The notes under the pieces were generated by a model. The model was given only the letters and a program-made list of their open reading frames with translations. It was not told the DNA's origin and did not search any database. The position numbers and the translations under genes are program-made. A stretch of DNA of 64,000 bases from Octopus sinensis. Taxonomy: Eukaryota. The stretch is taken from positions 71,734,001-71,798,000 of the forward strand of contig NC_043006.1 of assembly GCF_006345805.1 (NCBI RefSeq). Direction: 5' to 3'. Below, piece by piece: positions 24,001 to 27,000 of this stretch. Position 1 is the stretch's first letter, and each line of letters starts with the position of its first letter.

Positions 24001-27000
24001 ACATTTACAACCAGCTCTATCCCCATTATTACCCCAGCAAAACCCTTTATAATTACCATCTTGGGCCATATGGAAAAAAATTAACATCACACAGTCACAC
24101 TCAGGTGTCTCATGCTCGCACTCAGGTATCTCATGTTCGTTCACACTTACTGCATCCTTTTGGAGGATTGAGTCACACACAAAGCCATGCATTACACAAG
24201 CATGCACATTTATTGCATACTCACTCACACTTGGCTCACCAGCATGGAGGTTCACTTCACACTCAGAGTCATTTGTCACACAAGCATGAGCACATAGCTC
24301 ATGCTCACTCACACTTGTTGCACCCATATGAAGGGTTGATCCACACTCAAAGCCATGCATTACACAAGCATGCACGTTTATTGCACTCTCACTCCCACTT
24401 GGCCCATCTTCACGGAGGGTTACTTCACACTCAAAGTCACTTGTCACACAAACTCAAGCACTTAGCTCATGCTGACTCACACTTAACTCATGCTCACTCA
24501 CATTTAGCTCATGCTAACTCACACTTGTTATATCCTTATAGAGGGTTGAGCCACACTCAAAGTCATACATTACACAAGCATGCACATTTATTGCACTCTC
24601 ACTCCCACTTGGCCCATCTTCACGGAGGGTTGCTTCACACTCAAAGTCACTTGTCACACAAACTTGAGCACTTAGCTCATGCTGACTCACATTTAGCTCA
24701 TGCTCACTCACATTTAGCTCATGCTCACTCACACTTGTTACATCCTAATGGAGGGTTGAGCCACACTCAAAGCCATGCATTACACAAGCATGCACATTTA
24801 TTGCACTCTGACTCCCACTTGGCTCATCTTCATGGAGGGTTACTTCACACTCAAAGTCACTTGTCACACAAACTCGAGCACTTAGCTCATGCTCACTCAC
24901 ACTTGTTGCACCCATATGAAGGGTTGATCCACACTCAAAGCCATGCATTAGACAAGCATGCACGTTTATTGCACTCCCACTCCCACTTGGCCCATCTTCA
25001 CGGAGGGTTACTTCACACTCAAAGTCACTTGTCACACAAACTTGAGCACTTAGCTCATGCTGACTCACACTTAACTCATGCTCACTCACATTTAGCTCAT
25101 GCTAACTCACACTTGTTATATCCTTATAGAGGGTTGAGCCACACTCAAAGTCATACATTACACAAGCATGCACATTTATTGCACTCTCACTCCCACTTGG
25201 CCCATCTTCATGGAGGGTTACTTCACACTCAAAGTCACTTGTCACACAAACTTGAGCACTTAGCTCATGCTGACTCACACTTAACTCATGCTCACTTACA
25301 TTTAGCTCATGCTCACTCACACTTGTTACATCCTAATGGAGGGTTGAGCCACACTCAAAGCCATGCATTACACAAGCATGCACATTTATTGCATGCCGAT
25401 TCGCACTTGGTGCACAAACACAGTAGGCTGCTGCACACATTGCATAGTCACACTTCCCACAGTCACACATCGCACAGTCACACATCGCACAGTCACACAT
25501 CAAACAGTCACACATCACACAGTCACACATCACACAGTCAAACATCACACAGTCAAACATCACACAGTCAAACATCTCATAGTCACACTCACACCCCTCG
25601 TACCTTCTTAAACTTGCCACACTACTATACAGATACTCAAGAACCCTCTCTGGGACATCATTATCCCTATGATCTTTACTCTTCTAAAACAAACTCCTTT
25701 CACACCTTTTCAGACCCTTATCATTTTAAATCAAGCAAATATCATGATGATGTAACCCAAACTTACAATGATGATGATTACTTACCCCGTTATAAAAGAT
25801 CTGTTTCTAAACCCACTAAACCCACTAAACCCACAAAACCCACTCCTCCTAAATCTCATAACTATCCTGACAAGCATCCTTATCATACTAAATATGATTA
25901 TCAAGGCTCTAAATATTATCACCGTTATGGTTCTAAATCTTATAACTATTATGATAAGGGATATCCTTCCGGTCCCAAATCACACAAATATATTAAATCC
26001 TACCCAAAACCTTATTATCCTTATAACTACAAAAATTTTTACCCTTCTAAAAGTTATCCCCCTCACCCCTTTTCAAACCCTTACTATTCTAAACAAAGCA
26101 AATATTATGATGGTGCAACCAATTTTTATGATGATGATGATGATGATTACTTACCCCGTTATAAAAGATCTGTTTCTAAACCTCTTCTTCCTCATGCCTT
26201 GGCACACCATTTTCTTGATAAACATCATTTTCATGCTGAATCTCACCATCATCACGTCTTTAAACATCATCGTTATCATGGCTTTAAATCTTTTCACCAT
26301 CATAAGCCTAAATCTTATCCCCATCATAAGCCTAAATATTATCCCCATCATAAGCCTAAATCTTATCCCTATCATAAGCCTAAATCTTATCCCTATCATA
26401 AGCCTAAATCTTATCCCTATCATAAGCCTAAATCTTATCCCTATCATAAGCCTAAATCTTATCGTCATGGTCCCTATCGCTTTTATAGTAAAGGACACCC
26501 TTCCAATTTCAGATCTCACCGACATCAGCAACACTATGAATTCCCTTATTATTGGAATCCCTACTACATTCCTGAATATGACCATTTTAGTCGATCTTAC
26601 AACCCCAAATCCTACTGGCCTCCTTTTGGAAGACATAAGAGATCTGCTGATAAAAACTCATATTCTTCAAAACCCCACCAACATTACCCCTATGATGACT
26701 GTTACTCATTGAAACTCCAACCCCCTCATCACCACTATGGAAGCTTTTACACTTCTAAACCCCATGACCCTCACCACTATGGAAGCTCTTACTCTTCTAA
26801 ACACCATAACTATCACCACTATGGAAGCTCTTACTCTTCTAAACACTATGACACTCACCACTATGGAAGCTCTTACTATTCTAAACACCATGATCCTCAC
26901 CACTATGGAAGCTCTTACTATTCTAAACACCATGATCCTCACCACTATGGAAGCTCTTACTATTCTAAACACCATGATCCTCACTACTATGGAAGCTCTT

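Follow-up and report, generated by a model that had tools for sequence, protein, structure and literature searches.

Convertase processing of animal haem peroxidases is already known, from the propeptide of myeloperoxidase (MPO) and from peroxidasin, and the consensus for furin and other proprotein convertases is R-X-K/R-R. In MPO and eosinophil peroxidase the precursor is cut between the segments that carry the distal and the proximal His, internal residues are excised, and the chains stay together; the cut in MPO is not known to lie at a furin motif. Modular structural precursors are processed as well: the nacre protein Pif is cut at RMKR to give Pif97 and Pif80, and profilaggrin yields His-rich basic units. 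In the nematode cuticle, collagens undergo R-x-x-R processing by the kexin-like enzyme BLI-4 and tyrosine cross-linking by the peroxidase MLT-7. Here we describe a haem peroxidase gene of Octopus sinensis, contained in a 64,000-nucleotide stretch of contig NC_043006.1 (the window; positions 71,734,001 to 71,798,000 of the forward strand, numbered below from its first letter). The catalytic domain of the encoded enzyme holds an insert of 1,148 residues (23769-27212) in which three R-x-K-R motifs mark the borders of four modules. The best single explanation, which we hold to be moderately probable, is that convertase cuts at the three motifs would give a two-chain peroxidase and two free basic peptides.

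What is more remarkable than the sites is the structure of their host, a 1,148-residue insert in a loop that is probably closed by a disulfide, in an enzyme with an unusual haem pocket. A domain-sized, modular, low-complexity insert in the catalytic fold, with sites at every module border, is absent from the 119 closest homologues, a sample drawn from molluscs, arthropods, nematodes, cnidarians, and vertebrates. If the cuts occur, an enzyme and its structural or bioactive peptides would be encoded, delivered, and released together; if they do not, the gene would still be a striking case of a folded enzyme tolerating a loop insertion of this size.

Results and Discussion

Convertase-Type Motifs at the Module Borders

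The insert occupies most of a long open reading frame (ORF; 23697..27290, 1,197 codons), which represents an in-frame exon of the peroxidase gene. Translation of 25728-26648 in this frame bore out the three motifs, which had been proposed as furin-type sites in an initial annotation of the sequence (a slash marks the predicted cleavage point):

25788..25799, plus strand: site 1, RYKR/SV, CGT TAT AAA AGA / TCT GTT, cut predicted after 25799
26157..26168, plus strand: site 2, RYKR/SV, codons as in site 1
26631..26642, plus strand: site 3, RHKR/SA, AGA CAT AAG AGA / TCT GCT

All three are in frame with the long ORF. Four modules were defined within the insert by tandem-repeat analysis and coordinates:

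23769..25799, plus strand: module A, which would form the tail of the N-chain; its parts are a Tyr/Pro-rich stretch, a His10 run (from 23949), His-heptad repeats (24084-25439), SHT repeats (25440-25595), and a linker that ends with acidic patch 1 and then RYKR
25800..26168, plus strand: module B, a Tyr/Lys/Pro-rich peptide of 123 aa with an isoelectric point (pI) of 9.5 (Tyr 26, Lys 19); a TKP repeat at its N-terminus and acidic patch 2 (DDDDDD) at its C-terminus
26169..26642, plus strand: module C, a peptide of 158 aa with a pI of 10.0 (His 31, Tyr 23, Lys 21); a His-rich head followed by about 7.5 copies of HKPKSYP(Y/H)
26643..27212, plus strand: module D, the would-be head of the C-chain; the only Cys of the insert and Tyr/His/Ser 14-mers, with about 11.5 copies of HHYGSSYYSKHHDP at 26729-27212

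Modules B and C are the two internal basic peptides that the initial annotation had deduced, and their lengths and basic character agree with it. Sites 1, 2, and 3 form the A-B, B-C, and C-D borders, respectively. Site 1 ends 8 nt ahead of the TKP repeat, site 2 marks the switch from Tyr/Lys/Pro-rich to His-rich sequence, and site 3 ends 87 nt ahead of the 14-mer array.

The motifs are non-random. The insert is composed largely of His (22%), Ser (14%), Tyr (11%), Leu (11%), Pro (7%), and Lys (7%), and its 1,148 residues include just 23 Arg and 77 Lys. Against the three occurrences of R-x-[KR]-R that were observed, 0.040 were expected analytically and 0.036 from 20,000 shuffles of the sequence; at least two motifs arose with P = 5e-4, and three arose in none of the shuffles. 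Moreover, the sole KR, RR, or RK dipeptides of the insert are those within the three motifs, and every KR has an Arg at P4, Arg accounting for 2% of the residues of the insert.

The three sites conform to a longer common pattern, R-[YH]-K-R-S-[VA]-[SD]-K. Site 3 achieves it with different codons (AGA CAT AAG AGA TCT GCT GAT AAA) from those of sites 1 and 2 (CGT TAT AAA AGA TCT GTT TCT AAA), and by this difference it is no recent copy of them.

A Duplicated Cassette and the Acidic Patches

Sites 1 and 2 had been placed in a duplicated module, behind an acidic patch, and DNA-level alignment of the two copies agrees:

25701..25814, plus strand: cassette copy 1, HTFSDPYHFKSSKYHDDVTQTYNDDDYLPRYKR/SVSKP (HTFSDPYH...SVSKP)
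26064..26183, plus strand: cassette copy 2, HPFSNPYYSKQSKYYDGATNFYDDDDDDYLPRYKR/SVSKP (HPFSNPYY...SVSKP)

The last 45 nt of the copies (GATGATGATTACTTACCCCGTTATAAAAGATCTGTTTCTAAACC, encoding DDDYLPRYKRSVSKP) are identical, whereas the 5' portion of about 70 nt is about 80% identical, with differences that are mostly amino-acid-changing. Downstream of SVSKP the copies are unrelated (TKPTKP... versus LLPHALAHH...). The combination of an unchanged core, a diverged flank, and a third site written in other codons is compatible with constraint on the motif and also with gene conversion.

Among all 15-residue windows of the 1,718-aa model, the two with the strongest acidity (net charge -5 and -7) immediately precede sites 1 and 2; no such patch precedes site 3. 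The proposal that processing removes the acidic patches, as a charge or pH switch, did not hold up: the patches are on the P side of the sites and would be retained, at the C-termini of the N-chain and of the 123-aa peptide.

We also note that the Asp runs at 25767-25778 and 26127-26147 are each followed at once by a Tyr (DDDY-LP). Tyrosine sulfation by TPST, a Golgi modification that favours the processing of progastrin, depends mainly on Asp at -1 (PMC5562738). Sulfation of these tyrosines stays speculative: Leu is at +1, basic residues are at +3 to +6, and the tyrosines were not selected by a simple filter.

Predicted Structure of the Insert

The His-heptad repeats (SHLAHAH..) of module A are built of units of 84-378 nt, the long ones being 92-93% identical. 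AlphaFold2, run without an alignment, predicted helices of 67 and 53 residues for a piece of this region (24297-24716), with a local confidence score (pLDDT) of 84 and a template-modelling score (pTM) of 0.62; the region would look like a folded, His-lined helical hairpin or coiled coil, not like disordered sequence. For 25596-26729, in the same mode, it returned zero secondary structure (pLDDT 46, and 40-48 for the blocks around the three sites), and the candidate sites are therefore predicted to sit in flexible, disordered sequence. Both runs are single-sequence predictions and hence weak evidence.

Sequence Context, Secretion, and the Case for Uncut Linkers

The residues that follow the predicted cuts are those that human furin favours. 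In a large study of peptide cleavage by that enzyme, Ser was commonest at P1', Val and Ala were preferred at P2', and Ser and Asp were good at P3' (PMC3545927); the octopus sites have Ser, Val or Ala, and Ser or Asp, respectively, at these positions. These are preferences of human furin and may not be those of octopus convertases, and the authors of the study caution that the motif alone is no predictor of cleavage (PMC3545927).

Several other observations weigh against cleavage or against its having been selected for. First, Lys at P4' and Gly at P5 are reportedly among the residues that largely inactivate multibasic furin motifs (PMC3545927), and Lys is at P4' in all three sites and Gly at P5 in site 3, an unfavourable context for the human enzyme. 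Second, PXDNL carries good convertase motifs and yet is uncut (PMC8533639). Third, no 5' exon or signal-peptide exon was found in the window for the peroxidase gene. Fourth, the 45-nt identity of the two cassettes extends to synonymous positions, and a recent duplication, or gene conversion, could therefore have produced it even if the motif were under no selection. Finally, comparison of the 14-mer units yielded 65 synonymous and 162 non-synonymous differences, which is no synonymous excess, and because the repeat units lack such an excess this comparison does not demonstrate purifying selection on the insert. By codon position the 14-mer differences numbered 151, 170, and 157 at positions 1, 2, and 3, with no third-position excess, the codon-position test being uninformative among repeat units and the 70-aa units out of register.

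As to secretion, a search with the N-terminal regions of 86 homologues located no upstream exon. A candidate signal-peptide exon at 7322/7355-7416 (MIVTCVALLTLVLVA) was rejected because it lies inside a dispersed repeat, of which further copies are at 5736-5913, 27624-27923, and 47531-47791. Secretion would be expected only on the strength of the family to which the protein belongs and of its conserved disulfide and calcium motifs.

With these points in view, the alternative that survives best, although we think it rather unlikely, is that the cassettes are uncut linkers in one chain of roughly 200 kDa and that R-x-K-R is a by-product of their charge pattern, the acidic-to-basic switch (DDDDDD-YLPRYKR-SVSKP) acting as a self-association "sticker" or as a contact for metal, mineral, or chitin. 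The position of the two most acidic windows of the protein next to sites 1 and 2 favours it, as do the residues at P4' and P5, the failure to find a signal-peptide exon, and the precedent of a peroxidase whose good motifs stay uncut (PMC8533639). Against it, site 3 has no acidic patch and still presents R-x-K-R-S-x-x-K in other codons, all KR dipeptides of so Arg-poor an insert have Arg at P4, the P1' to P3' residues agree with the preference of furin, and the sites coincide with the module borders.

A further alternative, which we consider improbable, is that the sites are functionless passengers, a chance R-x-K-R in a Lys/Tyr-rich linker having been segmentally duplicated and the third motif being a coincidence. 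Identity of the cassette cores at synonymous sites is expected of a recent copy or of gene conversion, the insert evolves by tandem duplication (units 92-96% identical), and the 14-mer units carry no signal of purifying selection. But even when the duplicate is counted once, the shuffles give P = 5e-4 for two independent motifs; the flanking sequence of the duplicated module differs by about 20% between the copies, whereas their cassette cores are identical; and site 3 has four further positions in common with sites 1 and 2.

The Host Gene

The peroxidase gene was modelled by probing with peroxidase sequences (tblastn with consensus peptides) and then by reading splice sites. The model has 11 exons, with AG/GT at every boundary, consistent phases, and zero in-frame stops:

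18220..18377, plus strand: exon 1, peroxidase, ..PKCYEDELTYVNFHGKRREFRTANGTCNN..PPAYIDG; from tblastn with consensus peptides, AG/GT and phase, and the full-length Pfam match
20191..20370, plus strand: exon 2, distal-His motif FFSQAISHDL, His codon 20340-20342, donor CAA/GTAAGT
21949..21976, plus strand: exon 3, 28-nt microexon, NIDCCSGPLR, from a phase-constrained search, ttccacag/...GAG/gtaagt
23711..27282, plus strand: exon 4, the giant exon, with the peroxidase loop residues NKSICFPIVYSSHCPLDKC at its start and KVPCKKSCINLVRSSKSPFISTV at its end, around the insert
30400..30489, plus strand: exon 5, calcium-site motif, (R)EQVNEVTSFLDGSFIYG..; gapless alignment to the O. bimaculoides protein discussed below
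30954..31061, plus strand: exon 6, peroxidase, GLLRTSECLGLPFPP..PYPCFKT; matched by the same protein
33791..34036, plus strand: exon 7, peroxidase, GDSRDSS..LREHNR.., catalytic Arg kept, haem-ester Glu replaced by Ser; matched by the same protein
36246..36762, plus strand: exon 8, proximal His, FRFSH, His at about 36311-36313, ..FIQKGRDHGLPGY; matched by the same protein
38512..38669, plus strand: exon 9, peroxidase, CVDDIDLLVGG..GDRFWY; matched by the same protein
40293..40392, plus strand: exon 10, peroxidase, QLASISSVKMSRIIYDNT..; matched by the same protein
40959..41049, plus strand: exon 11, last coding exon, CYGYDCGYDRKYFPFKPIDLTPWKQVKKLI, then stop; matches the C-terminus of the same protein

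Exon 11 ends the model with a stop, without an additional domain downstream. A Pfam search with the long ORF alone assigned no family, and one peroxidase exon, used as the query for homologues, retrieved just one weak match. When the insert (residues 142-1289) is removed, the spliced product, which we call the core, matches the Pfam family An_peroxidase (PF03098) in one stretch over positions 1-530 of 530 (E 5.1e-139; 464.7 bits versus a cut-off of 25), and lactoperoxidase (LPO) and MPO match it with E of about 1e-69 to 1e-66. The view that the ORF is an insert in a peroxidase is upheld by this match. The distal His precedes the insert and the proximal His follows it, as had been predicted for the N-chain and the C-chain, and the mass of the precursor computed from the partial model, 200.4 kDa, fits the earlier figure of about 200 kDa.

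The microexon at 21949-21976 has strong splice sites and brings the distal-His exon and the giant exon into one reading frame; it could easily be overlooked by automatic annotation. Its CC doublet is present in about 90% of the 119 homologues. A competing piece with a C-x3-C spacing (NCEVDCVGG at 22158) was dropped as an exon because GAT/GTT low-complexity sequence surrounds it and a polypyrimidine tract is lacking; the microexon was taken in its place because its phase and splice sites fit.

Exon 1 contains a tribasic sequence, HGKRR/EF (KRR at 18266-18274), three residues ahead of the start of the Pfam peroxidase match and between two cysteines (PKC...GTC). It is not an R-x-K/R-R motif; it could be a further processing site.

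The best relative in the databases is an "uncharacterized" protein of 453 aa from Octopus bimaculoides (A0A0L8IF09, P0080), which is 93.6% identical to residues 1308-1743 of the model over 436 aa, without gaps, and which confirms the six downstream junctions and the last exon. It begins with MEVTMLYYLLLILLFLLSLTG, which corresponds to the translated polypyrimidine tract of the intron at 30342-30399, upstream of the exon at 30400. Because its start corresponds to translated intron, it is a truncated gene model that lacks the N-terminal third to half of the enzyme and the whole insert.

Position and Novelty of the Insert

The insertion point follows core residue 141, between Cys127 (CFPI) and Cys149 (C-INLVRS; C-x-x-F-x-RS), and in an alignment with LPO it falls between T153 and Q154, inside the loop from C139 to C157. 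Core cysteines 116, 117, 127, and 149 correspond to C129, C133, C139, and C157 of LPO and are present in 90%, 87%, 71%, and 95% of the homologues, respectively. In bovine LPO the disulfides are Cys129-Cys139 and Cys133-Cys157 (PMC6561912), and a disulfide homologous to the latter should span the base of the insert. Three more core cysteines, 136, 141, and 145, flank the insert directly, each of them in only 2-3% of the homologues. The suggestion that conserved loop disulfides would hold the two chains together is plausible on both grounds.

Cysteines occur in SSHCPLDKC (23750-23768) just upstream of the insert and in KVPCKKSC (27213-27236) just downstream of it, and the single Cys within it (26700-26702, YPYDDCYS) is in module D. 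These extra cysteines could provide an added clamp or an intermolecular link.

At the insertion loop the homologues have at most 17 extra residues (median 0), and none of the 119 has an insertion of at least 25 residues anywhere in the peroxidase domain. A homologue search with the giant exon brought up 8,000 word-sharing candidates, of which 0 were significant, and no record identical to the ORF product was found. HMMER, searching 1.84 billion representative proteins with the giant exon, returned 78 matches and no homologue of the insert; all six of the matches that were inspected were repeat-on-repeat alignments to unrelated methyltransferase-, kinase-, or Plasmodium-like repeat proteins, and the best stretch of none of the 78 reaches the SHT-to-HKPKSYPY region (sites 1 and 2) or site 3. 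A literature search on His-rich peroxidases of cephalopods or molluscs found nothing specific. The insert is apparently an octopus-specific, lineage-restricted modular expansion of one surface loop.

The least probable of the alternatives, and in our judgment a very improbable one, is that the insert is outside the main protein product (as an exitron, by skipping, or in a decaying locus) and that the sites never meet a convertase: in its favour are the O. bimaculoides protein, which starts downstream of the giant exon and lacks it, the want of a homologue of the insert among those 1.84 billion proteins, several unusual haem-contact residues, and a weak GT...AG pair, in frame, close to the two ends of the insert (read by eye from the sequence), but the loop residues on either side share frame and exon with the insert and are needed for the full-length Pfam match, 3.4 kb remain open in that frame, none of the only three GTAA-type donors in the giant exon pairs with a good acceptor for in-frame removal of the insert, and the start of the O. 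bimaculoides protein in translated intron looks like an annotation artefact rather than true absence.

Other long ORFs overlie the giant exon in another frame (25768-26712, plus strand) or on the opposite strand (26151-26636 and 23923-24447, minus strand). They are a by-product of its G-poor, repetitive composition (GC skew about -0.4) and imply no overlapping genes.

An Unusual Haem Pocket

The distal Gln/His, the catalytic Arg, and the proximal His are all present at the aligned columns. At the positions of Asp108, Glu258, Asn437, and Arg440 of LPO, the octopus model has Ser, Ser, Phe, and Lys, respectively. Among the 119 homologues these columns hold Asp in 69, Glu in 76, Asn in 97 (Asp in 18), and Arg in 117, and the Ser, Phe, and Lys at the last three are outside the five commonest residues. 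The same three substitutions (Glu258 to Ser, Asn437 to Phe, Arg440 to Lys) are found in the O. bimaculoides protein. The unusual residues lie in 20331-20342, 33791-33815, and 36246-36762.

By its Pfam match and catalytic residues the protein belongs to the animal haem peroxidases, loss of the ester links being common in the family and no bar to membership. The substituted haem contacts would make its peroxidase activity uncertain; the enzyme may bind haem non-covalently or may differ in activity.

A Model for Processing

We infer the following course of maturation, which is plausible and partly supported. The precursor would enter the secretory pathway, as do other disulfide- and calcium-containing members of the family, and disulfides would form between the conserved cysteines that span the loop and possibly also between the cysteines, nearly unique to octopus, that flank the insert at its base. 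In the late Golgi or in secretory granules, each of the three R-x-K-R motifs would then be cut on its C-terminal side by a furin-like proprotein convertase, and a carboxypeptidase would trim the basic residues. Two chains held together by disulfide would make up the peroxidase, the N-chain ending in module A as its tail and the C-chain beginning with module D as its head, and modules B and C would be set free as basic, Tyr-rich peptides of about 15 and 20 kDa. The acidic runs would remain on the upstream fragments as C-terminal tails.

The resemblance to MPO that had been pointed out is a partial one. In both cases the cut falls, or would fall, between the distal-His and proximal-His segments, the chains stay together, and internal residues are excised; the position of the cut and the haem ester residues differ. 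MPO excises a hexapeptide about 27 residues upstream of the octopus insertion point: its heavy chain starts near core residue 115 (residue 11 of that chain being core residue 125), just after the distal-His helix, whereas the octopus insert follows core residue 141 and its sites are beyond the CC...CFPI segment. The chains of MPO are tied by haem ester bonds, whereas the octopus model has Ser in place of both the Asp and the Glu. And, unlike MPO, the octopus precursor would release about 280 residues as two peptides and would leave long tails on both chains.

Peroxidasin, like the octopus protein a member of the Pfam family, is a secreted, matrix cross-linking enzyme that is cut by furin in vivo, and only its cut form integrates into the matrix (PMC8533639). 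Its single cut is C-terminal to the peroxidase domain, however, and frees no internal peptides.

Among structural precursors, Pif and profilaggrin resemble the octopus protein in joining compositionally distinct modules by R-x-K-R-type linkers within one secreted precursor, but their modules are not embedded in an enzyme domain and have zero sequence similarity to the insert; a literature search on the processing of Pif found nothing specific. In the nematode cuticle, too, Tyr-rich structural proteins are both processed by a convertase and cross-linked through tyrosines by a peroxidase, and an MLT-7 protein (P0154) is among the homologues of the enzyme part, but there substrate and enzyme are the products of separate genes, whereas in the octopus they would be parts of one polypeptide.

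Two further likenesses are of composition only. The HKPKSYPY and TKP repeats recall the Lys/Pro/Tyr-containing adhesive decapeptides of mussel foot protein-1, and module C (rich in His, Lys, Tyr, and Phe, with its pI of 10) recalls the cationic histatins of saliva. No homology to either was detectable in database searches with the insert.

Speculatively, a peroxidase could plausibly cross-link the Tyr-rich pieces through their tyrosines, and the His-rich helices could plausibly serve as metal- or pH-responsive assembly elements. An unlikely extension is that the one gene encodes a hardening or adhesive kit, consisting of a cross-linking peroxidase, Tyr/Lys/Pro-rich substrate peptides, and a helical, His-rich, responsive scaffold, which would be made in fixed proportions as a single precursor and freed by convertase cuts within a loop of the catalytic domain. 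An alternative reading of the same products is a defence precursor that would free histatin-like cationic peptides together with the peroxidase. If the cuts occur, the joint release of an enzyme and its peptides would bear on cephalopod biomaterials such as the beak, the lining of the suckers, and egg cement, and on bio-inspired Tyr/His-rich materials.

Surroundings of the Gene

The window is about 36% GC and contains many microsatellites and retroelement fragments. Copies of the dispersed repeat mentioned above (76-96% identical) are at 5736-5913, 7200-7440, 27624-27923, 47531-47791, and 55187-55210, one of them mimicking a signal-peptide exon. Retroelement-like ORFs on the minus strand (28004-28372, 39584-39952, 43276-43707, and 44405-44797) occupy introns of the peroxidase gene or the sequence downstream; their traits include ..RLRWYGHVARMDEDSCVKKC..GRGRPRKTW, and two related copies have ..NRPDI(V/I)L... 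Finally, near-identical ORFs (MHSECNKYKKNRPYLCINHK...) are found upstream of the gene at 16191-16427 and 16938-17180, about 747 nt apart and each followed by a (CA)n-rich tract; the pair is a local tandem duplication.

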